A stretch of DNA of 63,416 nt, filler included, from Perkinsus chesapeaki ATCC PRA-425 (taxonomy: Eukaryota > Protista > Perkinsozoa), in NCBI GenBank assembly GCA_013115145.1. It is 4 parts of 4 records of this genome, joined end to end, with 100 filler letters (N's around TTAATTAATTAA, not from the genome) between each part and the next. Parts side by side here need not be neighbours in the genome. Positions count along the whole stretch, not along the records: positions 31,820 to 60,273 come from JAAPAO010000471.1; 3 more parts are not named here. One strand, given 5' to 3'. A program made the position numbers and the translations under genes. Below are positions 31,820-60,273 of the stretch, piece by piece (within the stretch, counting starts at the first letter, position 1; each line of letters starts with the position of its first letter). The notes below the pieces were generated by a model, which did not search any database, was not told the origin of the DNA, and was given only the letters and a program-made list of their open reading frames with translations.

Positions 31820-32035
31820 AAGGGAGCGGTATGACCATAAAAGATACTTTAATAATAGAAGGGAGCGGTATGACCATATAAGATACTTTAATGATAGAAG
31901 GGAGCGGTATGACCATATAAGATACTTTAATGATAGAAGGGAGCGGTATGATCATATAAGATACTTTAATAATAGAAGGGAGCGGTATGATCATATAAGA
32001 TACTTTAATAATAGAAGGGAGCGGTATGATCATAT
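31820..32035. repeat. 39-bp tandem repeat, at least 5.5 copies, truncated by the gap
   Basis: Unit AAGGGAGCGGTATGA[C/T]CATA[A/T]AAGATACTTTAAT[A/G]ATAG starting at 31820, 31859, 31898, 31937, 31976, 32015. Confidence 0.95.
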
Positions 32036-32079
32036 ATGACTACATGATGTAGTCTACATCAATGCTTCACTGAACACAT

Positions 32080-33402: not shown

Positions 33403-34278
33403 TCACTCAGTGACTTTAGATTTCTTATGGATCCGATCCACTGCCTCGGCCACTCGCTTAACCATATCACTTCGTTCGGCAACAACCTTTCTCTCCGCTG
33501 ACGAAGGCCCAACGTCGAGACCGCCGGATTTGGCGAATTCCCGTATTTCCCAGGACACTCTTCGAACGGCGGTTTCGAGCTTCCTAGAACTCTTGTTGAC
33601 GCCGTCAATGTACTTCTCTCGATGAGTAGGAGATTCACAGCCGATTTCACGCGCCACGAAACTACAGATTCCATGAATCTTAATTTTAACGTTATCAGGC
33701 CGGCCGAAAAGATACGCGTTCCGCGAGGAACTAAAGGTGTACTTTTTATCGGCATAAAACTTCGCCACGTCCAGCAACCGCTCCCAGTTCTCGCCGATCT
33801 CAACGTCGATACCGTGCTCAGTGGCAGCCAGCTGGAGATCCCTCTCATATTTCCACAGAAAAGCCTCGCCTGCACTGGTTGGTTTGGCTTCGAAAGATTC
33901 ACAGGGAGCGTAAAGGGTACCAAGGCCGCGGACAACTTTGGAGCCGGAAACCTTATTAAGGTTGCTAGTAAAGTTGATGAAGTTAATTTCTTCTTTGTCG
34001 AATTCGTCGGTGGCGTCATCTCGACCTTGTACGTATCCTTCGCAACATTTCACATCGGAGATGACCTCGCCGCAATTAGTGCAAACATGCGTGGCCGTAT
34101 TGTGTTCGTATTCAACGAAGCTTATCGGATGCTTGCAGCACATAGCGCCGGAACCTCTATTAAGGGCGGGCCTGTCGTTTTGGAATGATAATATTGGCAG
34201 GGACAACGAAGGGGATTCAATCAACCTCTGGGGAATCTTTGGTATCTTGAAATCTTGCATTTCCTTAATGTAGCGCAT
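33403..34278 (-). CDS. Intronless protein with a TFIIB-type zinc ribbon (start may be Met at 34143)
   Basis: 291-aa ORF; MCCKHPISFVEYEHNTATHVCTNCGEVISD matches the TFIIB/BRF Zn-ribbon pattern C..(C/H)...VEYD...G..VC..CG.V. Confidence 0.7.
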   Translation of the reverse strand: MRYIKEMQDFKIPKIPQRLIESPSLSLPILSFQNDRPALNRGSGAMCCKHPISFVEYEHNTATHVCTNCGEVISDVKCCEGYVQGRDDATDEFDKEEINFINFTSNLNKVSGSKVVRGLGTLYAPCESFEAKPTSAGEAFLWKYERDLQLAATEHGIDVEIGENWERLLDVAKFYADKKYTFSSSRNAYLFGRPDNVKIKIHGICSFVAREIGCESPTHREKYIDGVNKSSRKLETAVRRVSWEIREFAKSGGLDVGPSSAERKVVAERSDMVKRVAEAVDRIHKKSKVTE

Positions 34279-34500: not shown

Positions 34501-35160
34501 ATGTCGGACGACCTTATTATTGTCCACGATACAGCATGTCTGGAATCGGCTTTCACCGTGAAGACCATCCATAAGAGCATGCTCAGCATCCTCGGCTTCA
34601 CTGTAAGGCTATCTAAACCACGCCTATCTAACTTAGCAATTTTGATACTAATGTTGGCTCAAGGTGGTAAACATGTAGTTGATTCAACGTATTCTTACCT
34701 TTTGCTAGCAACATCCGATCTCTCTTTCCCATCCATGGCTGAGGGATAATTAGCGTTCTTAAAAAGATTGTATCTGGTGGTTTTAGTTGATACAGCAAGT
34801 GCTTGTCTGGGGCGATTTCGGTCGATGTTTCAGGTCCAGGAGCCCAAGACCGATAAAGAGAACTATGTTGTGAAATCCCAGAACATCGGCTTTTTGATAT
34901 GTAAGTCAGTCTTTCCCGGTGGAGTGAGCTTTTTTCCAGGCGGTGCGGAGACTTTTAAAAATGAGGTTGTGGTCGATGCATTAAAGCAGGCCATTGAAGG
35001 GAAGAAAAATATTGTAATTGGCTTGTGTGGCGAAATTTTTTGAGATCTCTTGTAGGTCTTGCTGCATTGGATTTCGTCGTGCCCGAATATCGAGGAAGCG
35101 ATTCAAGTGGCTCCCGAGGCGTATAAGGAAGTTCTTGGTGGGAAAAAACAAATCATCTAT
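34501..35160 (+). CDS. TIR-like domain 1 of the dynein fusion (exons 1-4)
   Basis: [26 protein letters not shown]|[13 protein letters not shown]|[25 protein letters not shown]|VLLHW: TIR beta/alpha alternation. Confidence 0.6.
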
Positions 35161-38100
35161 GTAATACTTGATGGAAAAATTTTTGGAAAAATGGGAATTT
35201 TGCGGAAATTTTATGAGTAAGTATGTATGCTTGTTAATTTCAAGATATTCTTGTTGAAAGACCTACTCTATTTATGATTGATTTTTATGAATTTTATTGA
35301 TCGGGCACGATCGGGCACGCAAGCCATCGGTGTCGGTGGGATTTTTGAACTGGTATTAGATTGGGAAATCTTAAAATTTCCTGGGTGGATCGTCTTACTT
35401 CATCAGGTCGAAGACTTAATCAATGAGTGCAACGATAGTCTTCTGAATGTTCTGAAATTGGGCGACCAGGAGAGAGTTGAGCACGTTAGAGAAGTGCGAT
35501 CGAGACAGGCCATGGATGATATATTGAGATTTGGAGCGAAGGTGGTGACGTGGGACAGATTATCATTTCGGGGGAGTATTATCTCGTCTGAGGTCTGAGA
35601 CTCACGGTGTCGGTCGAGATTTGGGATTGCTCTCCGGGCTTCTCTGGTTCGGAAATTATGGGAACGTCGCTATTTCGTTTTTGGAGGGTGGAACTGAATG
35701 TAGCGGGCTCATTGTATTTGATCGTTTCAATTGTGACTAGCGAAGAGGAAGCGTTAAAAGTAAGATGGCATTAATAAATATGTAATGAGTGAAGTGATAT
35801 AGTGTCACGATAAGATACTCTGTATAATATAATAGTGCTGATATAGCTCATTACGTATAATGTAATACAGTGTCTTGAAACTTAATTTGTATTTTTTGAC
35901 GGTGGTTTATTCGCGTTAGAAGAACATGGCTTTTATATTTGCAAAATATGCAATCTGACGACGGGGTTTTTCTAGGCATTACCGCCAAAGGAGGTGTTAC
36001 CTCTAACGGTAGACCTTCCGGCTCATAAGTGTAATGAGAATATAAGTAGTGCAGTATAATAGTGTTAATATAGTTTATTATGTCTAGCTTAAGGAATATA
36101 GTATCTAGAAATTTAATTTGTATTTTTTGAGAGTGGTTAATTTCCGCAGGTATCTAAAGCTAGGATGAGATCGTCGGTTCGCAAAAGATATGATTTCTGC
36201 ATCACTTGTGCGAAACACATAATATCTGAGAAGGCACCGAGTATGGCGGAGCATCTTCATAAGTAACATTCGAGTTGGATTTGGTCGAGCAGCAGGATAG
36301 ATCTCTTTAGGCAATTCAACTCGTTGGCGCCAGCTCTGTCGGTGGCGCTCAATAACGGTGTGTCGTCTGGTTATAATAGCGTATCTGAAACGGCTCGGGT
36401 AAGGTGGGGTTACCTGGAAAGGCACTTGTTGATGTAAATGAACGTCCGTAACTATTTGGGCTTATTTCTCACCATTTTCTTTCGTTATCGGGCTCCATGG
36501 ATTCTTCCGTTGGAATCAGATCTTGTTATAGCCATAAAGAAGGGAAAGAATGCTGAAATCGGTTCCGCTTTGAAAAAAACGACCCAAAAATCATCGTTAA
36601 GTTGAACTTGAACTAACTGTCGAAACTCGGAAAAGTACTGTTGTTTCCGAAAAGCTTTCGCAGACTTGACAAATATAGCAGCTCCGAAACGGTTGCATAC
36701 TAAAGAACGAACAACTTGTGGTTAGGAGAAATGGCGCACCTCCCTTGGCTGGATTCTCTTGTCAGGTATCAAACGTGAGAGAGTCCTTCAATTTGGTCAT
36801 TCTTGTCACGGCTAACTGTTTTACCGATGAGCAACTTTGTGAAGAGGTCAGAGTTGCACTGGAGCAAGAGGTGAGTTTCGTGGCGCGTGAGAAAATTGTC
36901 ACCGAAGTGACCCGGCAGTGTTTGTCCGTTGATGAGAGATACCACCTATTGATTTGAACTCATTGAGAGGGAGATTGTAGAGAGTTGACGTTCATCGCTA
37001 CTGGTGTTACTCAAATCGTTGCCGGGCATAGAAATGCAAAGGTATACACAAACCTACTCAGTGATATGATTACTAGTGATTTCGATATACGAGTAGCAAA
37101 ACTGAGTTAGGCAGAGACGGTTACACAGATATGTGAGACGTATCTGGCGACACGCATGCGTTGTGTGCAGCGCGCCGGCGCAACGCACTATAAATATTAT
37201 CAAGATGTTGTGATTCTTAGATAATAAAGTCACTTGCATATCTTTAATAATGGCTACGGGCACCTCTAATAGGAGATCTAGAACGCCGGAAAGAATGTTG
37301 TATAAATGATAAAAATGCTAGCAGCGAGAAAAGTCATTTATCGGACTCTAGGATCTGTATTGGTTGGGAACTATAATTAACAATTATAATTCATTTGATT
37401 TGTTCGGATGTGGATGATGTTAATTAGGTCCATATTACGCTACTTCATGTGATAACTGATGCAACAGGAGGAGTTGAGGAAGAGCTGTTGCGTTGTGAAG
37501 ATTTGGTGCATAGAGATTGTCTTAGAAGGTAGACCAAAAGGCCTTGAGAATGCTTTACGGTTTTTCTATCAGATCTCCCACGTATTCTTATCTGCAAGAG
37601 CACGCCAGTGCAGCTGTCAGAAAACTGTTGTTGCCTGGTTTGGTGAAAATGGAGGAGAATAAGTCGCCGAGGTCGGTTGCAACTTGAAGGAAATGAGGAT
37701 ACTAATTTCGCGACAGGTCACGCGCAGCCGGGGTGCCGTCATTTCGGTTGGAATATAAAAACAGTAAAGCAATGGAGCTGCCGGGAGACGGTCGCATGGC
37801 GATGTAGGGTGCCGGGATCGAACCTGGGTGATTGGGTTTCGAGATCAGATATAAGCTGGCGAAGGAGGACTCTAAGAAGAATATTAGAGTGCCGTCGGAT
37901 ATCGATACGAATATAAAGTCTTTGTTTGAACTGTACGACACAGAAAGCAAAGGGGTGGTTGACTGGAATCAGTTTGTGAAGATCGATAGAGTGGGAAGAT
38001 ACGCGCTCGGAAATCTTTATAGTGCGCAATTGCAGGTCATCACGGAGACACTGGGAGGGCAATATAGTGAAATGATCAGTCGAAGAATTTACTCCCTTAT

Positions 38101-41100
38101 GCTGTAGGTTTTGATAAATCTGCGGAGGAGTCACGCGCCTCGCCTGTCAGGTATCCTGGCCTACCTCTGGACAGCGAGATTTCGTACACCACATTTTACA
38201 ACTATCATGCTTACGTATCAAAGAAAATGGGTAAGTTGAGAACGCGTTCTTTCTTTGTAGTGTGGAGAGATGGTGGAAATTTCATCATTTTTTCCGGAAA
38301 AATCGATGGAAATTTCGGAATGATTATCGAATGCACGTTTCCAGTCCAAGGAACTGTGAAATTCAGGAGGTTTTAGGTTAGAAAAGTTCCGAGGTCGGCT
38401 AGGGCTTCTCTGTCACTGGGAGAGATGCTGATGAAGATTTGTGAAAAAGTCGGTATGAAAGTTTGGATTTAGGTGTACTTGAAGGGGACAGAGATGTCGC
38501 CATTCATTACAAGTATTTGGTGGACAAGGCAAAGCATATGCGAAAAGGAAAACGATTCCAAAAAACGTAAGTTATATTCTTTTTCTTATGTCGCTTGTTT
38601 TTGTTGGTTTTCTCACTTCGCCGAGGTCTTTGGTGATGCGCTTATTCAGTTATCCGATTTCCTAGCGATTTTGGATTCGAGGAATGAAAAACGGCCAAAA
38701 ATATCAGAATCAAGTCACTTAGGACCACCAAAATTTCGCAGTTTTTTCCCTGATCTGCGCAACCACATTGCCGCCAGCAGTTTCCTATCTATACCGTTCT
38801 TCAGGTATGACTTGTTCATATGTCACGATCGCTCAAAAGAAGGCACTTCGATGGCTCTGGATCTGCTCAAGAGTATCCGAGATCACACGCCGAATGTAGG
38901 GAATGTCTTATAATGAAATTAAGATGTCATGATGAAACTAGTGTGATGAATCTTGGAATTGAAGAGTCTGCGAGAAAAAATTCTCATTTGGGGTCTTCCG
39001 GTTTTTTCGGCCAAATTTTTCCCCCAGGTCCGCACCATGCTTTGTATCGACGCTGTGGCTGAAAAAGAGAAAGAAAAGGATGCCAAGAAGAAGGATAACA
39101 AGAAGGATGGTGGAGGAGGAGGACCTCACAAGGGGGACCCTATGACTGGTGAGAAAATACGTTTTTTCAAGACGTATGATGTTTGAATGAAATCGATCGC
39201 GCGATCGATTTAGTCGTATGCCTGTATTTTTTGTTCTTCAGCTCCCAGCAAGAGCGCCGAGAGTTTGAATGTTGTCGTTATTTTGACTCCGAACGTTTTC
39301 GAGAATCCACAAGTCCAGAAGGACCTTCTCGAGGCCACCGAGGCTGGAAGCAGTATCGTGTTGCTCAGCGATGTCACCACAACTGCTGAGATGCTCAGTG
39401 AAATTAAGAAGGCGCCGGAAAATATCAAACCGGCTCTGTCAAGGTGAGGGGGAAAATTTGGTAATATTTTTCACTTTCCAAATTTTTCGTATTTTTTCCG
39501 TGGTCTGGATTTTCCGGCGGAAAATTATTTTCGCGAGTTCCCCCATCATTCTTCTGTAACTATTGGTTTTGGTGGATTTATCGAAGCGCGGGACGTAACG
39601 GCGGAGCAAATCGATTCTCAATTGAAGACGTCTTTTATGATTGCCACTTTCAGACCTAATTGTGTAGCCTACTGGAAGCACTGTGATGCTGCATGTTCGG
39701 TGGATCTCTTAAGTCTGCTCACCTTCCCGGACTGGAGGCCCCAGGCGGCAAGATCGACTATTCTGGCGGTGCAGGGTTTTAGTCCGTTGGTGAGATATTT
39801 GTTCCAGAATTGTGACGAGGATGAGGAGGTGAGACTGGTCCAGCAGCAGCAGAGTTGTAGGGGTGTAGACTGTAAGGAGTTTGAAACGTGCCAGTGGCAA
39901 AAAGAATCTAGTGAGAAGTACGAAGTGTTTACGGAACGAGTTTGAACAACTAGTATCGGAGTTGTTCTTACGCTTTGAGTATCGTCCTTCAATCCTGCCG
40001 AGCTTGGCTCTCGCCGCCGAATAACGATTATTTTTTGCGTCTCTAATGCAGGAGAGTCGATACTTTTGCCCTCCTTGCCCAGTATTCAGCTTTTCACGTC
40101 TTCTATTTCGATTTTTCATATGGGAAATTATATTAATGCGAATAGGTTTTTATTCATGGCTCACAGTTTCCCAGCGCGATTCCCATCCCCCACTTCTTCC
40201 TTGAGATTCACTGTGTTTTCAGACCGCTATTGCTTTCCGGTGCTTGGCCAACTGCACAAGCCCGTCCACTCTAAATGGCGCCAGAGTCAGAAAATCGTTT
40301 GCTCGCGAAGGTGGCATCGACATCCTCGCCGAGAAGTTCCAGCAGTTCATGAGCGTGCCGGCCGTGGCGGAGAACGCCTGCCGAGCGGTGGCCAATTTGG
40401 CGCAAGATGTTGAGATTTGTCGGAAGCTTGCCGAGGCGCGAGTAGTTAATATGGTGGTGGAATGCATGAGCAGTCATACGGATGCGGCACTGCTACAGGT
40501 GAGTTACGGGGATTTAGTAGTTGCCCTTGGATGAGGGACGGGAGAGTCCAAAGGTTTGAATAATAGTGAATTGGTGTAATTAAACGTAGTCGAGTCGCTG
40601 GTGTAGAAATACCGCTTTTATACGTGTAGGAAATTAGTCGATCAAGACTGACGATTTCAGCCAGAAAGGGCCGAGGTTTTTATGAGATGTCTTCGTGGCG
40701 AGAAGTAAAAGATATTTCGTAAAATCCCGAAAATTTCGTGGATCTGGTATTTTCGTGTGAGATTTTCCCGTAGAGTTTGTTTGGCAGTCTGTCGGGACGC
40801 ACGAGATTGAGACAATTCTCTCGCATAGCCTACCGCGTCGGTATATATAAGGATGTTGGGTTCAGGGGGAAGCGTCACGCGCCCTGAATAACTTGGGCCA
40901 AGAGGAGGTTGCCAAGCTTCGCATCACAGAGTTGTCCGGATTCCAAGCCGTCTTGCAAAGTCAGAAAAAGTTCGAATACGAACCTGAGTTCTGGGATGGA
41001 CGGTAGGCGTGAAAAGGAAAAACTGATAAACAAAAAACGTTTCGCTCCGCCTTTTCAGGTTTGCTATGAAGCGCTTGAAGGTTGACGATGTGGTGATGGT

Positions 41101-44100
41101 GAACTACCGCGGTAAGGGAAGATGGTGCAGCGGCAAAGTCCAGGAAAGTTACGCTAATGGGACGTATGATATTACCTATGCACACGGTGGAATGGACAAG
41201 AAGGTGCCGGCGCACTGGGTTAGGCCGAAGGATGAAAGCGATGCTGTGATGGAATTATGTGGCGTGTGGGAATGGAAACCGACGGGGAAGGTTACGGAGG
41301 ACGAGCTGATATTGAAGGCGGACGGGATGTGCAGTCTTCGATCGGGTGCTGTGGGTACGTGGAATCTTGCGCAGCCGAAAGAAGGAAGAACTCGAACTGC
41401 TATTAAGTTGAATATAGGGAAGAGTATGATCGAAATGGAGAGGATATCCTTGACGACTTTGAGGAGCACGACAACGAGCGAACGGGCGCTGCTGAAAAAT
41501 GAGTTTCCGGAGTGTGTGTATACGGAGTACTTTGGATTCGGTGATGTTAGTGTCGGAGAGAGAATGCCGAGCTTGACGGCGTTGAGGCCAGATCATGTTT
41601 GTGTGGAGCAGGAGATCTGCAAGAGCGTCGATGGCTGGGCGCATTTGCCGGAAAAACTGCGGCAAAATGTTGCGGTGCGATGGTCAGGATTTTTGGTGGT
41701 GGGGAAGATGGGCAAGTATACATTCACGTTAGATAGCGGCGGACCGTCGTTGGTATTTGTTAACGATAAATTGGTGGTCGAAAATACGGAGGAAAATTCT
41801 AGCGGAGCGATGCAGTTGATGCCAGGAAATCACAGGATAGACGCCCAGTAAGTGGAATTTCAGGGCGCGCTGATTCGCAGGATCGGATTGCTACGGTTAT
41901 GTTACTTGTACAAGATGGCTGATGGACTTTCTGGACAGCAGAAACGCCCTCAGCTGTTTGCTTTATCAGATTCTTCTCGGCATCGGAAGGTCCTCAAAGC
42001 TACTTGAATCTACTCTATTCCGGTCCCGATACGGGGGATGAGCAGATGAAGGTGCCAGCGGCGGTCCTGCAGCATTCGGTTGAGCAATCGGAGGTAAGGA
42101 GGGCAGAAAATATTACTCTGTGCGAATGATAACGACAGTACGTGGAAAGGCAATCTACGTGGGTTTAATCTTTTTGAGGACCTATTCCCTGACCAGCTTG
42201 AAGTAAAAGTGCGGTATATTAATAAAGTCTCGTTGCGAACGGGATCTGCATCTGCAGGCTGTAAGAGTTAGCTGCGTTCTTGTACTGTAAGTTGTCCATT
42301 AGCCTTGTGCAAGGGACAACTTATAGTCCACAGGAAGTGAGATACAACCGGATGCCCTGCATGCGTCCACAGTTCTGTACGCACGCCCTTTGTTTATGCG
42401 TGTAAGGGGTAGTAACCCGACATAAGTCTCCACACATTGGTGTGAGAGGTAGGTATTGTCTACTCATCTCGACTCTTAATCTCAAGACTTCCCTTGCGTT
42501 ACTTTGGTAACGGGGCAACCAAAAAATGGTAGAAATGATGGTATCATTTTCGGGTCCATTCTTCTTGCCTGCCACAGCCTCGAAAGGCGTTTCTGAATGG
42601 TGTGGCTTATTGTGCACCTCATCAGGTAGCATACACGTTTGGTTGGAAAAGCGCTCTTACGTTCCAACCTTTTGCATGTGTCTGTCGTATGTCTGATTTT
42701 TTCTATGAAGATGCTCGAAATTCGATCATCTATTTCCGGGGTTTCAGGTTGTCAAGAAACCCGGGTTTCTGGGAGAGTACTTTTCTGAGGATCTTGGCGG
42801 TCGAATTCCCGAAGGAAAGTACCCTGATGTTGTCCGGGTCGAGAAGCAGCTGGATTTCGAGGCGACCTCGGAGGCTTGGGAGAATCTTCCAGCGCGGTTC
42901 AGTAAATCCTTCGCAGCGCGTTTCACGACGTATCTTAGCTTGAAGTGCGGAGGAAGGAAAAAAGCGAAGTAGGCGAAATCGGCTCTCGGTTATTCCGATA
43001 CTTCGATTTAGGTATTCGTTTGCTGTCGACTCCAACAAATGCGCGAAGGTCTACCTGGATGGCAAACTCGTCATTGAAGAGGACGCTTCTTTCGAGGTGG
43101 AGTTGTCCTCTGGTCCACACAAAATGCAGGTTGAGTATTTTTGTGGCGCGTCGGAGGCAGCTCACGCGCTGACGCTCAAGTTTTCGGGACCGGAAACGAT
43201 TCCGCCGGGAACCGAGGACGATTCGGAAACGGCCAAGAATCCACCGATGGTCAGCTTGCCAGCCGAAATTTGCTCTTACTATCTTCGACCGACCGTCGCG
43301 CTCCCTCGTGGTGACCCTCTCGAAGCTCACGAGAAGTCGGTGCCATTTGTTGGGTGCAGTGATGAGGTGACGATGGTGTCTGCGGGCGCTGATGGGAAAA
43401 TCTGCGTCTGGGATTTGCCAACTTCTGCGGTGAAATCGACGATCGATGTCGGGCAACCGATCACCTGTGGGCGACTGAGCGCATCCGGAAGATTCCTCGC
43501 AGTTGGTTTGGAGGACGGCAGCATTTCGCAGTGGGAAGTGGCGTCGGCTAGGCAGCACGGGAGCCCGATGTTTGGCCACAGTGGCGAGGTGAACTCGGTT
43601 ACGTATTGCGCCGAGGATAAGAAAATATTGTCGGTCGGACACGATTTGTCTGTTCGAATTTGGGAGGCAGAAAGTTGCGAAGAGCTGGCGAATCTGGCGG
43701 CCAATCCTCACAATCGGATCGGTGATGCGATCGAACAGTCGTGGGCGGATTGCTCGGCGGCTTATGATGACAAGATGGTGGTCACCGGAGGGAAGGACGG
43801 CTGCATTCGATTCTGGGATACGGAAAAATTGGACACCTTGCGAGGACCGGAGAAGGTGATGCCGTTGCCTGAGGAGCCTGAAGATGGATGGGGTGAAGAG
43901 GGCCCGCCGGAGCCGGAGAGGATTCCGGGCGAACCGATACTGATCGAAGGTAGACTGGGGATTTCGTGCTTACTATTGCTTCAGAAGTCTCTGCTGTTTC
44001 ATAATGTTGAGGCTCTCTAGTAATACAGTAATTATATTTGAGAGCAGCATATGATTACCGGCCGTTGTTCTCTACTCTCATTTCCCCCCCCCATCTTGGG

Positions 44101-50100: not shown

Positions 50101-53100
50101 TTTGTTTGAACTCCGGTGAAATTATCAAACTTTCAGCAACCACTACGATGATTTTCGAAGTGCGTGATCTGGCGGTGGCGTCTCCGGCGACGGTTTCACG
50201 GTGCGGCATGGTCTTCATGGAGCCGGATTCGGACCTGGGATGGAAGCCGATCGTGCTGTCTTGGCTCGACTATCAGATTCCTGACTATATCAGAAAAGAG
50301 CATCGCGATCTGCTCTGGAAATTATTTGAAAATAATTTTGAGATTTGCCTCGAGTGCACGCATAGGGTTCGAACCCCAGTCGCTGTGATTGACAATTGGC
50401 TGGCGGACAGCGCGTGCAGGTTGATGGAATGCCTTTTCGAAGACTCTGAGGAGCGTTACTGCCGACCGACTACGAGCGACGATGATGAGCATTCTCAGAG
50501 CGCTGCGGACCGGGAGCAACTAATCTATGCCGTATTCTTCTTCGCAATGTTGTGGACATGTGGAGCGTGCACGGACCAGGAGGGACGAGCCTTTGTGGAG
50601 TCAGTCATCCGGGCGATGTTTGAGAATAAGAAGGAATTTATCAAAAAGCAGGATTTCGTGACGCAGTGGGAAATGACGGAGCTCGTCAGCGGGCTGTCGC
50701 CAGCACCGCTGCCGAGCAAGGGACTGCTGCACGACTATTTCATCGATTCGGCCGATGGAGGAAAGTGGAAACCGTGGACGGAAAAAATAGGGAATTTCGA
50801 CGTTCCCAAGGACGCTCAATTCCACACTATTATTGTGCCCACCAGCGATACCGTCCGGAACCAGTTTTTGATCAGGACGTTGATCGAGAAGGGGAAGCAT
50901 GTGCTGATGTCGGGGGTGACGGGAACAGGCAAAACGGTGTCGATTGCGGGCATGCTTTTGAACGGATTTGACAAGGAAAAATATTCGACGATTTCCTTTG
51001 CGTTTTCGGCGCAAACTACGGCGAACCAGACGCAGGATATTATCGATGGGAAATTGGACAAAAGACGGAAGGGCGTTTTCGGTCCGCCGATCAACAAAAA
51101 AATGCTTGTGTTTGTGGACGATGTCAACATGCCGGCAAAGGAGACCTATGGCGCTCAGCCACCAATCGAAATTCTGAGGCAAGGATTGACAATGAGTGGT
51201 TGGTATGATAGGAAGACGTGGGAGTTCAGACAGTTTGTCGATATGCAGTATCTGGCAGCGATGGGACCGCCAGGGGGAGGGAAGAACGATATCACTGATA
51301 GATACTCGAGACAGTTCAACCTTATATTCGTCACACCATTCGATGATGAATCTCTGGCGAGAATTTTCACAACGATGGTTCAAAAGTTCCTTGGGGTGAT
51401 GCCTCGGGAAGTGGCGGCGAATGCTCCTACGGTGGTGGCCGCGACTATAGAGGTTTACAATACGATGTCGGCGGAGATGTTACCAACTCCGGCGAAGTCG
51501 CATTACACTTTCAATCTGAGAGATCTCAGTAAAGTGTTCCAGGGCATTTGCCAGTGTACGAGGGAGAGCTTGCCCAAGGTGGGTCAATTGGCGAAGGATA
51601 TTTGAAATCTGTAAATGACGTTTGTGAGGTCTCTCCTACTCGCCGTCGGAATATCTCTCTCATCAAACTAGGGTACATTCTGCGCCATCTCTCAGTCGAA
51701 TCCGTCGCCGAACGATCTCTTTTCAAGCAATTTGGAAATCCGTTTTCTGAAGATATTTGTTTTTAGGCGGAAAAATCTTCCGGATTCCTTTACGTCGAAT
51801 CTTGGTGTAGTTTGCTCCCCTCATCACCGTGTGTGGGCGAGGATGCGCCTTCATCCCGACGCTGTCACTTGTCAATCCTCGCACTTGCAAAATATGCGAT
51901 TGTCTCATGGTAAATTGGTCACTTTTGTCAGGTAGACGATCTTGCAAAATGTTGGATGCATGAGTGTCAGAGAGTCTTCGAGGACCGTTTGGTTAACAAG
52001 CCCGATCACAACTGGTTCTTCTTCCTCATAAAACGCCTCCTCGATCGCCACTTTAAAAAACAATATGACCAAGTTGTAAAACAGGAGCCGATCGTCTTTG
52101 CGAGTTTTGTCGACCCGAAGTCGACAAGCTATATGGAAGTGCAGGACCACCAAAAGTTGCAGGAAAAAATGACGACGTGTTTGGAGGACTTCAACGCAGT
52201 TTCGAAGATTCGAATGGATCTTGTCCTCTTTACGGCGTTCATACAGCACATTTGCCGCGTTGTGAGGGTAAGTTGTCACGCGCCAGGAAATTATCAAATT
52301 TATAAAAACGAATTTTCCCGTGGAAAAATCGGTTCTGGTGTTAAGCAGGAAGTTTTCTTTCTTCAATATCTTAGGTCGAAGCGCGAGAAATTGGTACAAG
52401 TGCCTGGTGGTCGAATCTTTAGCATTTTAGGTCCTCAAGCTTCCGCTTGGTAACGCTTTATGTGTTGGTGTTGGTGGAAGTGGACGAAAAAGCACTGCGA
52501 CACTGGCGGCGTTCGTGGCCGACTTCAACCTGTTCCAAGTGCAGATCTCGAAATCGTACGGGATGACCGAGTGGCGAGACGATATGAGGAAGCTGCTTAT
52601 GTCTGCCGGGTGCGATGACAAAAATATGGTGTTCCTTTTCCCGGACACGCAAATTGCCAATGAGAACTTCCTTGAGGATGTCAGCAGCATGCTTAATACT
52701 GGTGAAGTGCCGAATTTGTATGCCAATGAGGACAGAATGGAAATTCTGGAGAAGTGCAGCAAGATGGCGAGTGCTGATGGCAAGACCGGACCGAATGAGG
52801 TCTTTGCTTGGTGAGTCAGTGGCTGCCTAGGTTGATTAGTGCAGCAGCGACTGGGGAAAGATTCCTGGCGTTTATGTCGTGAGGATTCATTATTTTTCAT
52901 GACTAGTACCCGTGAGAAAATTTGTGATGAAATTTCGGGTCGATCGGAAAAAATTTCCGGAAAAGTTTCCAGTAAAAAAATTCCGGAAAAGTTTTCAGTG
53001 AAAAATTTCCGGAAAAGTTTTCAGTAAAAAATTTCCGGAAAAGTTTTCAGTGAAAAATTTCCGGAAAAGTTTTCAGTAAAAAAATTTCCGGTGTATACAA

Positions 53101-56100
53101 ATTACCTGGGGGCATTTTACGTAACTTCCTAGTGTTGTTCAGGTACGTCGAGAACTGCCGTAAGAATCTTCATATCGTCTTGGCCATGAGCCCCATCGGT
53201 GACAAATTCCGAAAGCGTCTCCGTATGTTCCCGAGTCTTGTGAACTGTTGCACAATCGATTGGTAAGCAACCGCGCTCGGGCTTGAATTTTCGAATCGAA
53301 GCGTTGGCCTCTATCCAGCTGGCCAATACAATCACGAGGGACTGGATTCTGCGAAAAATGATTTTAGTAGTCTTGGTATTAGTTCCATTTCGAGGAGAAG
53401 ATATCGCGTAGCTAGTGCATGCTTGAAGCTAAGATACTTGTCGGTGCACAACGCTGTGATTTACTCAGGTTCATGGAGTGGCCGCCGGATGCCCTCACTG
53501 CTGTGGCGATGCAGTTCCTGAAGACGCAGGAGATGCCCGAGAATGTGTTAAACGGTGTGGTGAAGATTATGGTGGATATGCAGACATCGGTATCGACATT
53601 AACGGAGAGATTCCTATCCGAGCTCCGGCGGTAAGATAGGTCCACGGGTTCATAGAGCTCCGCGGAAATGGGTTTTTCAAAGCGCGCTTCGAGCTTAGAT
53701 TCGCAACGGCACAAGTGTTCCTTCTGGAAATAACATCTCTCGTTCTTCCGTGCTTTTGCATAGGACTGGTACCACCTTTCAGACATTACTATGTCACACC
53801 GACCTCTTATTTGGAGCTAATCAATTCGTTCATACAAATGCTCAAGCAACAACGACACGTCGTCTCCCAAGCCAAGTGGCGCTATGACGTGGGCCTTGAA
53901 AAATTGGCGGACACGGCGAGCCAAGTGGCGACCATGCAAAAGGAACTTGAGGACCTTCAACCTAATCTGGAGAAGGCGGCGAAGGAGACCAGTGAGATGA
54001 TGATTCTGGTGGAAAAGCAGCAGGGGGAGGCGGCCGAGAAACAGAAGCTGGTCGACGCTGAAGCGGCTGCTGCGAACGAGCAGGCGCGAGCTGCCGAGGA
54101 AATTGCTGCAGACTGCCAGAAGGACTTGGCCGCTGCAATGCCGGCCTTGGAGGCTGCTGTGGACGCGCTGAGCAAGCTGAGCAAGGGAGATATCACTGAG
54201 GTTAAAGCGATGAAGACGCCACCTGGTAGGGTAGGGAGCTTTAGTCGGCTCGCATCTCTATTCGGGAAGTCTGGTTTCAATCATTGAATCGGATCATCTT
54301 ACAAATCGATTGCATTCCGCGATGACAGATCAGATCGTACGTCGCGAATCTGTTGCAACTATTATAGGGTACCCCAAAAAATGCGTTTTTCCAACTTTTC
54401 AAGAAAGGCGAATATTTTGTCGACACCAAAAGTTCGTCGAAAAAGCACATCTTCTTGGGGACACCCTGTGGGATTTTTTTGTTAATATTCAAGGAGGTTT
54501 CAGATGGTGATGAATGTTTTAATCTAACCTCACTTCCCTGAGATAGGCTGATTGGTTATCGTAGTCATGCCGGGCACTGGGGACTCGCATCTCGGGTTTT
54601 GCCCCTATGGTCACTTCTTGCTCAGGTGGTGTCGTACTGGTGGCCCAGGCTCTGTGCTACTTCTTCGGCGTGAAGCCTAATAAAGTACCGGCGCCAGATG
54701 GAAAGGGAAAAGTGGACGATTTCTGGGAGCCTGCGAAAAAGGAGCTTCTTGGTGATCCGAGATTGCTCGATCGGCTCATCAATTTTGACAAGGACAATAT
54801 TTCGGAAGAGGCGATGAAAAAAGTGAACATATTTTTTGCCGGGCAAAGTTCATCACAATTTTCAGGTTAAACCGCTCTACGACGATCCAAACTTCGAGCC
54901 CGAGGTGATCAAAAAGGCGTCAATCGCTGCAATGGGTATCTGCAAATGGGCACGTGCAATGGTGGTGTATGACAAAGTCGCGAAGGAAGTCGGCCCTAAG
55001 AGAGCAGCGCTCGCACAAGCCGAGGGAAAGGCCGCCGCGGCGAAGGCTAAACTGGCTGAGAAGGAGGCCGAATTGGCTGAAGTGATCGCGCTGGTCGATA
55101 AGTTGGTGTCGGATTTGAACAATGCGAAGGAGTATATGGAGGAGTTGCAGAAGCAGAGAGACGATTGTGCTGCAAAGCTTATCAGGTCGGGGGTTCGATC
55201 CCGTCCTGGGGCTTTTATTTCTGCTTTTTGCTCGTTTGTTTGGAATGGGGCGCTGCTTATTGTCGAGGCATTCAAAATTTGCAGAATTGGAGAGCGAACA
55301 GCCGGTGGTCGCGAGGACAAAGCGACTGTCTGTTTTCCAGGGCCGAAAAGCTCATCACTGGTTTGGGTGGTGAGAAGTCGAGATGGACTGCTGCCTCGAA
55401 CAGACTTGGCACCGATTACAACAATCTTTCCGGCGACATTCTCATCGCAAGTGGGATCATCGCCTACCTTGGTAAGAGGGAACTCTTTGCGCAAACTGGT
55501 GGGAATTAATCGACCAATTACAATATTTTCGAAATATGTGCATAGCCGACCGCATTCGGTTAAAAAGTCGAAAGCGAAGTTGGGCCGAAGCAAACGGGCT
55601 TCGGCTGAACTTTTGTTGAGTTCCGGTCGGTTTATAGAGCTCATAGAGCGTGCTTCTGGGACGGTGTGGTTTGGAAATTGTAGAGCTTGAATGAGGGAGG
55701 GTAATAGATAGTCGAACACTAGTCGTAGAATCTTTTACTTCCTGGAATATCCGTTAGAAATCGGAATGTATTCCTTTTGTCGGGTGAGGGACGTATCTCC
55801 TATTTGGTATGGGCTTGAGGATCCCTCCCCCATCGATGAGATGGCGAGATATCAGACTCTTAGGTGTTTTCACGGCCTCCTATAGAAGTGATGTGATGGA
55901 AAAGTGGCTCGGCCGGCTACAGGATTTGAAGATTCCTGCAAGCCCTCAATTTAGCTTACAAGCTTGCATTGGCGACGCGGTGAAGATCCGGCAATGGTAG
56001 GTTTGGGAGGCGCTGTGTGGATGGAGGGCTTCATTAGGGTCATCGACAAACTGCCTAATGATTCGCTCTCGATCGACAACGCTATCATTTTGAGCAACTC

Positions 56101-59100
56101 GAGGCGATGGCCTCTGATGATAGACCCTCAGCAGCAAGCTAACAAATGGATCAAGAATATGGAGAAGAATCTTCAGGTTGGACTGACCGCTTGTTGGATC
56201 ATTACATTTCAAATGCGCTAGGTGTTGAGGCTGTCGAAGAACTATGCACGAGAATTGGAAAATGCCATCCAATTTGGGAACCCCGTTTTGATCGAGAACA
56301 TTGCTGAGACGCTGGACCCGATGCTTGATCCTTTGCTCCAGAAGGCCACCTTCAAGCAGGTGGGTCCTGAAAGTCACCGCGCCACGAAATTATTCTTGTA
56401 GGGCAATTTGGAGATGATACGATTGGGAGACAGTACGATCGAGTGGTCAAAGGATTTCCGGTTATACTTCACAACGAAGCTGCCGAACCCTCATTATGCA
56501 CCGGAGATCTGCGTGTCCGTTACCATCCTCAACTTCATGGCTACAGTCGATGGCTTGCAAGACCAGATGCTGGGTAGGTCGGATCCGTCCGGAGCGGTAA
56601 ACCCAAATCGGCGCGTTCCGGTCGGATGGTGCTCGAATTTGACTCCATCGATAATGCGAAAAGTTGCTGCACTTGGGAAACTCCACGTGTCAGTAGTTGG
56701 AAAAAGGAAAAGTTTATCCTTGAGGGAATATAAGAAAGTTTTCTGCCAAGTGAGCTGAAGACAAAGCTGGAGACATGATTCTTATTTAACGAGGACCGAA
56801 GGTTAATCGATAAATGGCTAGCGGATCGGTTGTTTTTGAGGAGCTTTTATGCGCCTTAGAGTACCGAGGGAGATAGGTTGATATATCATTGCATCGTTGT
56901 CTCATGGCTCATTGTTGATATTCATGAAGCTTCACTTGCTTGATGTTGCAGGTATTGTAGTTGCCAAAGAGGAACCAGAGATCGAGGCGAAGCGTGTGAG
57001 TCTGGTGGTGGAGAGTGCGCAGTCTAAAGCACAGCTCAAGGAGATCGAGGACCGGATACTGGCGCTACTGTCTAGCGCCACTGGTACGGGACTTCAACTA
57101 GGAGGAACTGCATCACTCCGCCTCTTTAGGCAATATCCTTGATGATGAGGAGCTGATCGAGACATTATCGAACTCGAAGATTGCCAGTCAAAAAATTGAA
57201 GAGCAAGTCCAGCAGCAGGAACGCACTGCCGCTCAAATTCAAGAGACTAGGCAATCCTATAGGCCTTTGGCTCTGAGGTGGGATACGACCTGTTCAAGCA
57301 GCGCTGAGAAAAGCCGAATTTCACTTTGTTTCTCGCACATTCCTGGCAGTTGTAGGATTAGTGGACCCATAGTGGACCTTCATTCCTCTCAGATCAGCCT
57401 CCCTTTTCTTCGTGGTATCTGACCTCTGCATTGTGGACCCTATGTACCAATACTCTTTGGATTGGTTTATTATGATATTTATAATGTCGATTGACCAAGC
57501 CGAGAAGGCACCCTCGCCAGCTGACCGAATGGCGAATCTTTCCAAGTAAGTTTGAAGTAGCCACGTCGATTACAGTATCCCTTTCAGTTCAACAATTCGT
57601 CTTTTGTATGTGATGGTGTGCCGCTCGTTGTTTGAAGCTCATCGTCTGTTATTCTCCATGCAACTGGCATTTAAGATGCAAGAAGTCGACAAGGAGCTCA
57701 ACTTCAAACAGATGCGGCTTTTCTTGACCGGAGGCGGAGGGGGTGGTGCTCCATCTGAGGAGAAGCCTCCTGACACAGCGTGGCTTACTGGTAGGCATAC
57801 CACCTCGAGTTAAAGTATGCTTTTACTTCTCCTGTGCATTCCGCTATGATAGAGAATTACTTTGCTCCAAAGATCTTGCTTACTTCTCCACACGATTTTC
57901 CCGGCTTCAGTTTGAAACTCACGGTACACTGTGAACATCAGTGAAGCAAACCGCAGGCGTCGGTTTACGTTGCTTTGCAGATATCTCATGGGGAAGAGTG
58001 CTGGAGTTGGCTAAATTAGGCGAGACTTTCGACGGTTTTCAAGAGTTATTCAAATCCCAGCTCGAAGGTTGGAAGGTGAGACGTCTCCTCCTTGATAGAG
58101 CAGCGATGACCCGTCACCTTGTCAGGCTGTGTTCGATTCTGATAATCCGCGGGACCTGGAATGGCCCATGAGCTTCGAGAAGAAGTGTAGCCCGTTGGAG
58201 AAGGCATTAGTCCTCCTGGCAGTCCGAGCAGACGCACTCGTTCCAGCCATACAGGAGATCGTCGATAAAAAATTAGGTAAGATAGACGTCACTGCGCCCG
58301 GAAATTATCGCTTTCCGGATCGGCTCGCAATATTTCGGGTTTCGCTTCACTGGACCTCTCGGATGGCATTTGACTTTGTGTTTTAGGGAGCTTCTTCTTG
58401 GAACCACCACCGTTCGATCTAGAAGCCTGCTATAACGATTCTAAGAGCTGCATACCTCTGGTCTTCGTGCTCTCGAGCGGCAGCGACCCAATGGCTGATA
58501 TTATCAAGCTAGCCGAAGGGAAGGGTATGCTTGCTAATATCTCGGCGATCAGTCTGGGACAGGGCCAGGGTGAGCTTGAGGCTCCCGTCTTGGTCTGAAA
58601 AGGGCTGTCAGGACCGAAGGCGATGGCGGCACTTGAAGAGGGAACCAAACACGGCAAGTGGGTGTTGCTGCAGAACTGTCATTTGGCAGTCAGCTGGATG
58701 CCTGTCCTCGAAAAAGTGAGAGCTTTTGGCGCCGCTGCTCATTTCACGCGCCTCAAAATTTCAGGTTGTAGAAGATTTCCGGGAGGAAGATATAAACCCT
58801 GCATTCCGTCTGTGGCTCACCGCCATGCCAAGTCCAGCATTCCCCATCTCGGTTCTCCAGAACGGCATCAAAATGACACTGGAACCGCCCAAGGGTCTGA
58901 AGAACAGTTTAGTTCGGGCGTATATGGGTAAGTGGTATTACTTGGGTTCTTACTAAGTCTTGACAATGAATGATCAACAGGTATGGATGACGAATGGTTT
59001 GAGAGCTGCAGTAAACCGCAAGCTTTCAAGAAGCTCCTGTTCGGCTTGTGCTTCTTCCACGCTGTCATTCTGGAACGAAGGCAGTTTGGCCCTCTGGGAT

Positions 59101-60273
59101 GGAATATACCGTACCAGTTCTCGGAGCCCGATCGAGATATATCTCGCCAGCAGCTGAAGAACTTCTTGGATGACTTTGAGGGTATTCCCTGGAAGGCTCT
59201 GAGCTATATGGTCGCAGAAGCCAATTATGGTGGTCGAGTTACGGACGCTCAAGACCGGAGAGCTATTGTGCACATTCTGACAGATTATTACACGGAGCGT
59301 ATCCTCAAAGAAGAGTACAAATTCAGCATCAGTGGCATTTACTTTGCTCCTAAGGAAGGAACCTTGTCATCCTACATGGAATATATCCGAGAGCTTCCTA
59401 TCAATCAAACGCCTGAGGTATTCTGGCTCCATAACAATGCCAATCTCACTGCGGCCATCAACGAGGGTATGGAAATCCTAAGAACGGCGGTTATGCTCAT
59501 GCCGAAGACTGGTGGGGGCGATGCCGAGGAGGGAGAGAAGGAGCAAAGTCCGGAAGAAATCTACGGTGAAAGAGCAGCCGAGATCGTAGCATCTTTACCG
59601 CCGAACTTCGACGTGGAAGCGGTCCAGAGAGTGTACCCGGTTCGGTACGATCAGTGCCTGAATACAGTTCTAGTACAGGAGCTTTTAAAATGCAACAAGC
59701 TGCTCAATAAACTCCGGGACACTTTGGTGAATTTACAGAAGGCCGTCAAGGGTCTGGTGGTATTCAGTCCAGATTTAGAGGAAGTAGCCGAGGGGTTGCT
59801 CAGCAACAAGGTCCCATCGGTCTGGGCAAAGGTGTCGTATCCTAGTTTGAAACCATTGGGAAGCTATGTGGCTGATTTCTTGCAACGCTTGAAGTTCTTT
59901 GATAACTGGATCAAGATGGATGCCCCGACAGTGTTCTGGTTCTCCGGCTTCTTCTTCCAACAGGCATTCCTCACAGGAGTGCTGCAAAACTTCGCACGCA
60001 AGGACAAGATCGCGATAGATCGATGCATTTGGAATATGGAGGTCCTGAAGGCTGACAATACGAGACCAGATGAACCGGAAAAAGGCTGCATTATCAGAGG
60101 CCTATTCATGGACGGTGCAAGGTGAGCTTGTTGGATCCGAGCCAACGGCTGCAGTTCTTCCTGTTAGATGGGATGATGATAAGATGGTCATTGCTGACTC
60201 CTTCCCAAAGGTGTTATTTTCGGAAGTCCCATGCATTTGGCTGAAGCCTGTTGAAATGGATAAAGATGAGACG
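34501..60273 (+). CDS. Giant multidomain axonemal dynein heavy chain (single-headed inner-arm type motor) with N-terminal 3xTIR-EF-ARM-Tudor-2xPA14-WD40 extension; 3' end lost in gap
   Basis: 28 phase-consistent GT-AG exons 34501-44843 (4845 nt) splice in phase 0 to the dynein tail exon at 45255; AAA1 GPAGTGKT 47696, [11 protein letters not shown]2 GLPPC|GKT, AAA3 GVTGTGKT 50913, AAA4 GVGGSGRKS 52467, stalk/MTBD 53900-55200, AAA5 [16 protein letters not shown]6 [10 protein letters not shown]-terminal [10 protein letters not shown]. Confidence 0.85.
36150..37671 (+). CDS. TIR-like domain 2 of the dynein fusion
   Basis: [17 protein letters not shown]|..[35 protein letters not shown]|VHITLLHV..|[19 protein letters not shown]. 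Confidence 0.7.
37849..38230 (+). CDS. EF-hand-like pair of the dynein fusion
   Basis: [23 protein letters not shown] (degenerate loop, Q at position 12) plus a second helix-loop-helix [19 protein letters not shown]. Confidence 0.6.
38805..39768 (+). CDS. TIR-like domain 3 of the dynein fusion
   Basis: [24 protein letters not shown]; [38 protein letters not shown]; [17 protein letters not shown]. Confidence 0.75.
39808..41002 (+). CDS. Armadillo repeats of the dynein fusion
   Basis: [60 protein letters not shown]|[10 protein letters not shown]. Confidence 0.8.
41059..43260 (+). CDS. Tudor/agenet-like domain followed by two PA14 domains of the dynein fusion
   Basis: [35 protein letters not shown]; PA14-1 [47 protein letters not shown]|[10 protein letters not shown]; PA14-2 [10 protein letters not shown]|[40 protein letters not shown]. 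Confidence 0.85.
43310..44800 (+). CDS. Seven WD40 repeats of the dynein fusion
   Basis: Repeats ending KICVWD, SISQWE, SVRIWE, CIRFWD, TIKIWD, LVQLFS, TIRLWH. Confidence 0.9.
52948..53091. repeat. 26-bp quasi-palindromic tandem repeat (~5.5 copies) in a dynein intron
   Basis: TTCCGG cores at 52955, 52981, 53007, 53033, 53059, 53086; unit AAAAATTTCCGGAAAAGTTTTCAGT[G/A]. Confidence 0.95.

Follow-up and report, generated by a model that had tools for sequence, protein, structure and literature searches.

A dynein heavy chain gene of Perkinsus predicted to carry a conserved module of TIR-like, ARM, PA14 and WD40 domains in place of its tail

Can a dynein heavy chain exchange its helical tail for an unrelated set of globular domains, and what might such a chain do? 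The question is raised by a stretch of DNA from the protist Perkinsus chesapeaki ATCC PRA-425 (assembly GCA_013115145.1), 63,416 nucleotides (nt) long with filler included and called here the window, in which positions 31820 to 60273 come from record JAAPAO010000471.1. An earlier note on this DNA had read from it a single chain, in which a multi-domain module, standing where the tail should be, is followed by a motor of the single-headed inner-arm type. We find that this reading is backed, beyond the chaining of splice sites, by the sequences of other organisms. The segment from 34501 to beyond 60273 is, as we reconstruct it, one Perkinsus gene of at least 60 exons with a predicted protein of ~5,000 residues. 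We hold it to be highly probable that the product is a fusion protein, in which a canonical motor has had its tail swapped for a conserved module acting as tail and docking platform, most likely in an axonemal setting, with TIR-like units that serve in self-association or regulation.

The region 31820-60273 is eukaryotic DNA in which GT-AG introns are abundant, many of them of 40-60 nt and the largest of 654 nt. We obtained the gene model with a splice/coding dynamic programme that was trained on long open exons, and the model was then corrected against orthologous proteins from Perkinsus olseni and from an environmental contig, L004. (Working labels are used below as follows: L001-L004 are environmental contigs, L006 is a Cladocopium locus, and L007 is the P. 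olseni locus JABANP010000151.1, 10001-33130.) The exons of the N-terminal part, 34501-44843, are these:

Exons 1-7, + strand: 34501-34602, 34834-34900, 34940-35013, 35056-35160, 35407-35541, 36150-36262, 36311-36398
Exons 8-14, + strand: 36766-36870, 37428-37528, 37573-37671, 37717-37803, 37849-37990, 38036-38103, 38151-38230
Exons 15-21, + strand: 38473-38566, 38805-38895, 39028-39148, 39242-39443, 39654-39828, 40223-40498, 40866-41002
Exons 22-28, + strand: 41059-41847, 41970-42093, 42748-42968, 43012-43949, 44293-44447, 44510-44613, 44666-44843

All introns in this part are GT..AG and no in-frame stops occur. The count of 28 stop-free exons from the ATG at 34501 agrees with that of the earlier note, but their sum is 4971 nt or 1657 codons rather than 4845 nt or 1615 codons, a difference of 126 nt. 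Several items from the ab initio chaining were dropped after alignment to L004 and P. olseni, namely the exons 35687-35759, 35976-36008 and 42533-42690 together with micro-exons, and the retained introns 37991-38035, 39829-39910 and 44844-44939. Downstream of the module, 32 further exons encode the motor as far as the edge of the piece at 60273, where the motor runs off the 3' edge; the whole model thus comprises 60 exons and 4938 codons. The P. olseni locus matches 4912 of these 4938 codons in collinear order, which puts the gene model far beyond chance.

The critical point of the model is the junction between module and motor. The exon 44666-44843, which ends the WD40 part of the module, reads on and joins 45255 in phase 0, as had been proposed; the same sequence was recovered in the rebuilt model. 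The donor, CAGAAG/GTGAGA, stands at the 88th percentile among donors of the dynein gene. The junction intron (44844-45254) is 411 nt long, in a gene whose introns have a median of 132 nt and include three that are longer (557, 608 and 654 nt), and it contains no ATG. The region is arranged as follows:

44778-45460, + strand: neck across the junction, made up of the end of exon 28, the 411-nt intron and exon 29; a helical neck of ~90 residues joins the module to the linker

If the join 44843/45255 were an artefact of chaining, two adjacent genes would lie here, one for a 1,657-residue scaffold that ends after the WD40 part and the other for a separate, tail-less dynein. Consistent with such an arrangement, the junction intron exceeds the usual length in this gene (411 nt vs the median of 132) and its acceptor is weak, and retention of this intron would keep the frame open to a stop at 45177. 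Also, perkinsids add a leader to their mRNAs by trans-splicing (PMC3101222), a process that could in principle use an internal AG. However, the gap has no ATG, and a protein begun at the next in-frame Met, just before DHC_N2, would be a motor without any tail. More directly, in an alignment of nine orthologous sequences from at least 5 organisms the frame is open throughout the junction, the only gap is of one residue, and the sequence is conserved on both sides. Those that read through the junction are L004, L001, P0151, P0152, P0155, P0224 (Cladocopium goreaui), P0285 (EukProt) and P0282/P0154 (P. olseni). In L004 the two halves lie together on a single contig without introns, and the P. olseni annotation at NCBI splits the gene within the motor and not at the junction. 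The earlier note had named orthologues that are always two proteins as an outcome that would speak against the fusion; the orthologues instead cross the junction in one frame, and we regard two genes as very improbable.

Individual orthologues illustrate the point in different ways. L001, a 4-kb intronless contig from the Joint Genome Institute (JGI) that carries P0011, has a frame that passes from WD40 blades directly into the dynein linker, and a search with this stretch returned P0151, P0152 and P0155, each with WD40 and DHC_N2 in a single open reading frame (ORF). A partial P. olseni protein has the same join, which is shared by the P. olseni models P0154 and P0282. The most extensive of the environmental sequences, L004, is a 10.5-kb intronless contig found in a metagenome scan; it has an in-frame stop, then a Met (MADDGVFVFDK), and then an ORF of 1871 residues that covers the entire module and continues through the first 124 DHC_N2 positions. 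The frame then slips within that domain, whose remainder follows, with AAA_6, AAA_5, AAA_7 and AAA_8 to the end of the contig. The change of frame is probably an assembly or sequencing slip. The two ORFs overlap by 85 nt inside DHC_N2 (L004 5664-5748), and a similar overlap is present in L001 at 2764-2794. The Cladocopium orthologue, 62% identical to L004, requires 26 kb of genome for 1910 residues, and the lack of introns in L004 therefore suggests that L004 derives from mRNA. As for the beginning of the protein, the region of the start codon matches KAF4688458.1 of P. olseni and dinoflagellate orthologues (MADDGVFVFDK / MGDDVVFIFDK / MDDVVFVFNK), and in L004 the in-frame stop lies upstream of the start Met. 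Positions 1-11 of L002 are CTTCGCTCAAG, which, apart from one mismatch, is the 3' end of the spliced leader of Perkinsus and dinoflagellates (...CTTGGCTCAAG, PMC3101222); this suggests that L002 represents a trans-spliced mRNA with its 5' end just upstream of the start codon of the module (ATG at 71).

Among annotated proteins, the C. goreaui orthologue of 1910 amino acids (aa), an 'unnamed protein product' that UniRef calls 'Dynein heavy chain 7, axonemal', contains PA14, WD40 and DHC_N2; an orthologue in EukProt (2657 aa) has PA14, WD40, DHC_N2 and AAA_6; and a Symbiodinium necroappetens orthologue is annotated 'DNAH7'. P. olseni KAF4688458.1 (2491 aa) has the N-terminus of the window protein and spans the module into AAA2, and the next P. 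olseni gene model (1783 aa) supplies AAA_8, MT, AAA_9, Dynein_heavy and Dynein_C, from which it follows that the annotation divides the gene inside the motor and not at the junction. The Cladocopium gene model (L006) is truncated, and every public annotation that we encountered was truncated or split. It should be noted that the P. olseni annotation (JABANP010000151.1) also omits several exons, including part of the first PA14 domain and parts of the linker. A HMMER library search with exon 22 mostly brought up unrelated proteins rich in copies of the 55-residue Agenet-like unit described below; it gave ~10 true orthologue fragments among the 150 matches listed, the motor being present in none of these. 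One orthologous fragment, the 479-aa ARM-Tudor-PA14 protein P0028 (MEB3327592.1), is deposited under a Synechococcus metagenome-assembled genome; its source is almost certainly a eukaryotic contig that was mis-binned.

The motor itself is of ordinary construction. Its parts are located as follows:

45510-47158, + strand: dynein linker (DHC_N2); Pfam DHC_N2 scores 268.7 bits on 45912-46664, and model position 14 falls at 45511
47159-53630, + strand: AAA1-AAA4; Pfam AAA_6, AAA_5, Dynein_AAA_lid, AAA_7 and AAA_8
53783-60273, + strand, cut by the edge of the piece: stalk and microtubule-binding domain (MTBD), AAA5-AAA6 and C-sequence; Pfam MT, AAA_lid_11 and Dynein_C, collinear with the second P. 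olseni model

DHC_N2, AAA_6, AAA_5, AAA_7, AAA_8, MT, AAA_lid_11 and Dynein_C all score far above their Pfam cutoffs. The four Walker A motifs lie at 47696, 49519/49807, 50913 and 52467, and the Walker B motif of AAA1 at 48062; in AAA1 both Walker A (GPAGTGKT) and Walker B (DEFNR) are intact, as are the P-loops of AAA2-AAA4. The AAA4 motif GVGGSGR.S, on which the earlier note had drawn for the motor type, was located as GVGGSGRKS at 52467-52493. To judge from these motifs and matches, the C-terminal ~3,300 residues are a complete and apparently active motor. The relationship to single-headed inner-arm chains was likewise borne out, as the nearest relatives in the PDB are DNAH7 and the single-headed chains of Chlamydomonas. 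With the linker exon, DNAH7 was best (211 bits), followed by DNAH12, the Chlamydomonas monomeric inner-arm chains, DNAH3 and DNAH1; with the AAA2-3 exon, the Chlamydomonas monomeric chains, DNAH7 and DNAH1 were near-equal (505-517 bits).

The tail that should precede this motor could not be detected. Pfam gave no match to DHC_N1 on the window exons, on the ORF segments scanned, or among the 25 families listed, of 31 in all, for the first ORF of L004. The linker stretch of the window corresponds to DNAH7 residues 823-1069, and ~700 residues of a DNAH7-type tail are without counterpart in the fusion protein. In L004 the WD40 repeats end near residue 1654 and DHC_N2 begins at 1737, with only ~80 residues between. 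These comparisons indicate that the ordinary helical tail (DHC_N1) is replaced by a 1,657-residue module of predicted globular domains.

The order of parts in the module is TIR-like, TIR-like, EF-like, TIR-like, ARM, Agenet/Tudor-like, PA14, PA14 and WD40 propeller:

34501-35418 (exons 1-5, aa 1-120), + strand: TIR-like unit 1 with the start codon; an internal repeat of units 2 and 3 (blastp)
36171-37600 (exons 6-10, aa 169-306), + strand: TIR-like unit 2; collinear with L004 aa 172-300 and a repeat of unit 1
37877-38558 (aa 369-484), + strand: helical domain resembling an EF-hand pair, loop at 37937-37972; Pfam EF-hand_6 (E=8.5e-4) and EF-hand_1 (E=3e-3), both below threshold
38559-39729 (exons 16-19, aa 485-650; YDLFICHD begins at 38806), + strand: TIR-like unit 3, from the predicted fold of the orthologous L004 segment
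39730-41002 (exons 19-21), + strand: armadillo-repeat (ARM) region; Pfam ARM_ARMC5, E=2.5e-9 on 40223-40498
41059-41533, + strand: Tudor/Agenet-like barrel (~41060-41233) by a weak Agenet match, then a conserved beta-rich linker
41534-42093 (end of exon 22 and exon 23), + strand: PA14 domain 1; Pfam 36.5 bits vs a cutoff of 24, E=5e-9 on 41060-41845
42748-43270 (exon 24 and start of exon 25), + strand: PA14 domain 2, an internal duplication in which 41582-41839 cross-matches 42748-42957
43310-44777 (exons 25-28), + strand: WD40 beta-propeller; Pfam WD40 39.3, 28.3 and 30.7 bits on three exon pieces

Three assignments of the earlier note, the ARM region, the two PA14 domains and the WD40 propeller before the motor, proved sound. 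We grade the ARM region as solid, ARM_ARMC5 being matched in the window and also in L004 (aa 655-792), L002 and L003. PA14 domain 1, for which the nearest PDB sequence is the 6qdi PA14 protein, is above threshold in the window; the second is recognized as its duplicate, with matches to the PA14 tail on 43013-43096, and L004 has two Pfam PA14 stretches, with an orthologue score of 55.4 bits. The WD40 repeats are above threshold both in the window and in L004, where aa 1284-1654 score 112 bits. That the propeller could be a dynein intermediate chain joined to the motor was considered and set aside, as no dynein intermediate chain was present among the best 60 PDB sequence matches; its nearest PDB sequences are generic (Nostoc WD40, PkwA, Apaf-1, WDR5 and Notchless).

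The remaining labels fared less well. The Tudor domain did not stand as such, there being no Tudor-superfamily match above threshold; what could be kept is a weak Agenet-like match, which on an orthologue reaches 19.8 bits vs a cutoff of 27 (E=1e-3). The ~100 aa that follow this unit are highly conserved among orthologues. In many large proteins that are otherwise unrelated (e.g. P0001-P0010; up to 7,637 aa), the 55-residue Agenet-like unit (41060-41233) is found in tandem arrays of 10-35 copies. Calcium sensing by EF-hands, likewise proposed, was not upheld: ligand positions 5 and 12 of the loop are occupied by Lys and Gln, as they are in the orthologues, and with the acidic ligands missing there calcium binding is unlikely; the Pfam scores are 17-19 bits vs cutoffs of 25 bits. 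What remains is a helical domain that resembles an EF-hand pair. Yet no other part of the module is as conserved: this domain has 90% aa identity to P. olseni, a proportion of nonsynonymous differences (pN) of 0.055, and many residues invariant across dinoflagellates. It equals the motor in conservation and may be the key surface through which the module interacts.

The claim of three TIR domains stood in part. None reaches the Pfam threshold, and on exon pieces of the window no TIR match was found with Pfam, which we attribute to the splitting of each unit over 4-5 short exons; the ORFs of orthologues were used instead. Unit 3 of L004 scores below threshold (TIR 15.3 bits vs a cutoff of 21.3, E=0.017; ThsB_TIR 13.5 vs 21.2, E=0.096), and a hidden Markov model (HMM) profile of this unit, run against PDB sequences, gave chance matches only and no TIR. 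However, a TIR fold is predicted for it. AlphaFold2 modelled L004 unit 3 alone with a mean local confidence score (pLDDT) of 69 and a predicted template modelling score (pTM) of 0.68, and a Foldseek search with this model placed the SARM1 TIR domain at the top (E=4.5e-5 to 1e-4; template modelling scores of 0.62-0.70 by query, TMq, and 0.70-0.76 by target, TMt). Further matches were to TIR-1, SIGIRR, IL-1RAcPb, SPARTA and plant TIRs, other flavodoxin-like folds being lower. When the first 655 residues of L004 were modelled together the result was poor overall (pLDDT 50) and the Foldseek answer for unit 3 was unchanged. Units 1 and 2 are connected to unit 3 by internal repeats; unit 2 vs unit 1 gives E of about 1e-4 to 1e-8, and unit 1, for which there is no Pfam match, owes its label to homology to unit 3 only. 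We therefore keep the term TIR-like, which the predicted fold justifies for one unit and internal repetition for the two others. As for the description of the module as one for signalling, this would be a label drawn from the names of its domains.

The resemblance to SARM1 could be taken further, in that the TIR-like units might be active, SARM1-like NAD+-cleaving enzymes, and the protein a motor-coupled signalling enzyme rather than a passive anchor. The best structural matches of the modelled unit 3 are indeed the TIR domains of SARM1 and TIR-1, and an ARM region next to TIR units recalls SARM1, though the order is reversed. By eye, AKEIVAA of L004 may resemble what we take to be the catalytic-Glu helix of SARM1. 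Against this, the candidate catalytic position in unit 3, chosen without a residue-level structural alignment, is Glu in some orthologues and Asp in the window, P. olseni and Symbiodiniaceae; the unit 3 profile finds no TIR in the PDB and Pfam TIR remains below threshold; and a SAM domain is absent. We therefore regard enzymatic activity of this kind as quite unlikely.

Between the window and P. olseni, protein identity is 73% in the module and 91% in the motor; between the window and the dinoflagellate L004 it is 43% in the module and 70% in the motor (over 1500 aa), and the order of domains is the same. Selection is expressed here as pN vs pS, the corresponding proportion of synonymous differences, because the synonymous sites are saturated and preclude a proper dN/dS. 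Measured against P. olseni, the module has a pN of 0.17 and the motor one of 0.06, with a saturated pS of ~0.79; pN is low in every domain. As pN is far below pS in every domain, all parts of the module are under purifying selection, and on this evidence it is a functional, conserved portion of the protein. The alignments further indicate that the fusion is conserved between perkinsids and dinoflagellates. A decaying or chimeric locus (a misassembly or pseudogene), in which the fusion would have no biological role, might be suspected from public annotations that are fragmentary and inconsistent with each other; yet 4,938 codons are free of stops, the motor motifs are all intact, pN is far below pS in each domain, and the same architecture recurs in independently assembled genomes and in environmental contigs. 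We give this explanation almost no weight.

Compared with known dyneins, the fusion protein is closest to the single-headed inner-arm chains (DNAH7/DNAH12/DNAH3, that is IAD3/class 7, and those of Chlamydomonas), which it resembles through the full motor from linker to C-sequence. Those chains, however, have a helical tail of 700-1,000 residues that binds actin with p28 or centrin and docks on the doublet, where the fusion protein has 1,657 unrelated residues. Exchange of the tail has a precedent in the outer-arm DHC4-alpha dyneins, which have an N-terminal tail with Kelch, IPT and filamin domains (Kollmar 2016, PMC5100056). In both cases an N-terminal tail was exchanged for propeller-type domains throughout a lineage, and in both this was found by comparative genomics; but the DHC4-alpha chains are outer-arm dyneins with Kelch/IPT/filamin domains (Ig-like ones among them), range over the Diaphoretickes and keep some of the normal tail. 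In class-10 dyneins the extension is C-terminal and consists of seven WD40 repeats that are not homologous to known intermediate chains (PMC5100056). The fusion protein is like them in having a WD40 propeller on the heavy chain that is unlike known intermediate chains, and differs in that its propeller lies directly before the linker and its motor is canonical, whereas in class 10 the propeller is C-terminal and the motor is aberrant around AAA5. Some plant and stramenopile dyneins are also chimeric (PMC5100056). With SARM1 and Caenorhabditis elegans TIR-1, which are ARM-SAM-TIR NADases, the protein shares the predicted fold of unit 3 and the presence of TIR and armadillo parts in one chain; with its reversed order, three TIR units, no SAM, sub-threshold similarity and a candidate catalytic residue that varies among orthologues, it is not a member of that group.

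The earlier note knew of no such dynein. In full-text literature searches we found no paper describing a TIR-like/ARM/PA14/WD40 dynein architecture, and the Kollmar survey (PMC5100056), in which Symbiodinium dyneins are included, mentions no PA14, TIR or ARM tail. However, models from P. olseni, Cladocopium and Symbiodinium are present in databases as 'hypothetical protein' or 'DNAH7'. The architecture is therefore undescribed in the literature searched, yet it is not a new kind of system.

We propose that the module takes over the job of the tail. In this view the motor would be anchored to a lineage-specific structure or cargo by a platform built from the WD40 propeller, which lies beside the linker, the two PA14 domains and the ARM repeats, and the docking structure would most likely lie within or next to the flagellar axoneme. 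Self-association or regulation would come from the three TIR-like units, such that a normally monomeric motor could act in groups, and the motor would pull toward microtubule minus ends in the ordinary manner of dyneins. An axoneme-associated site is favoured on two grounds, the axonemal single-headed type of the motor and its high conservation. A different site can be envisaged for the same fusion protein, which might be a cytoplasmic or cortical cargo motor on a vesicle, an organelle or the pellicle, for example on subpellicular or apical-complex microtubules. The tail that docks on the axoneme is wholly gone; PA14, ARM, WD40 and TIR domains typically bind ligands or partners; the WD40 propeller is generic and unlike a dynein intermediate chain; and for most of its life Perkinsus is a trophozoite without flagella. 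On the other hand, the motor is most like the axonemal single-headed dyneins, it is strongly conserved (91% between Perkinsus species, 70% to the dinoflagellate), and a single-headed dynein alone is not expected to be processive. We rate a site away from the axoneme as the less likely of the two, but on the sequence alone as a serious alternative. A bolder version, which seems to us unlikely, would make the protein a new perkinsid/dinoflagellate class of dynein that works elsewhere than at a standard inner-arm site, is recruited to a lineage-specific structure through PA14, WD40 and ARM parts, and is gathered into multi-motor arrays, or turned on and off, by SARM1-like TIR domains; if this were true, the oligomeric state or activity of a dynein would be controlled by TIR self-assembly or by NAD+ chemistry.

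Several points weigh against the proposal of a fused, axonemal, TIR-regulated dynein. The acceptor at the junction, TGATTAG/ATT at 45255, stands at the 20th percentile for the gene and is graded only average. In this species the one-chain fusion is read from genomic sequence, with orthologues as support. The putative cDNA origin of L001-L004 is deduced from their lack of introns. No single sequence covering start to C-terminus was found among candidates admitted up to 1.75 times the query length, a limit that excludes proteins of ~5,000 aa. Assignment to the DNAH7 group is a ranking of scores and not a placement in a tree. The TIR fold of unit 3 is taken from a model of medium confidence made for an orthologue, TIR-like units 1 and 2 were modelled by AlphaFold with low confidence, and those parts of the proposal that concern localization, oligomerization and cargo derive from the types of domain present.

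Dynein tails set the position and cargo of the motor, and the fusion gene is a further clear exception, with a foreign but conserved tail, whose domains are better known from innate-immune scaffolds and adhesins. As the fusion is common to perkinsids, which are parasites of oysters and clams, and to dinoflagellates, which include coral symbionts and bloom formers, it is an ancient trait of all that lineage and could be used as its marker. How a single-headed dynein can be re-targeted might be studied here as a natural experiment, and the gene is a concrete target for tagging in transfectable Perkinsus.

On the 5' side the gene is bounded by the following feature:

33406-34278, - strand: divergent ORF of 291 aa with a weak TFIIB zinc-ribbon match (E=5e-3), its start 222 bp upstream of the ATG at 34501

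The presence of a divergent, minus-strand ORF so close to the ATG sets the 5' limit of the plus-strand gene, and, with 222 bp between the two start codons, the ORF and the dynein gene may share a promoter region. At the P. olseni locus the upstream neighbours differ from those of the window gene. Two tandem repeats were also observed. A 39-bp repeat at 31820-32036, at the 5' edge of the piece, is present in 5.6 copies that are 97% identical, in an array that may be cut by the edge; and a 26-bp repeat, AAAAAATTTCCGGAAAAGTTTTCAGT, is present in 5.5 copies at 52948-53091, within the intron 52811-53142 between AAA4 exons.

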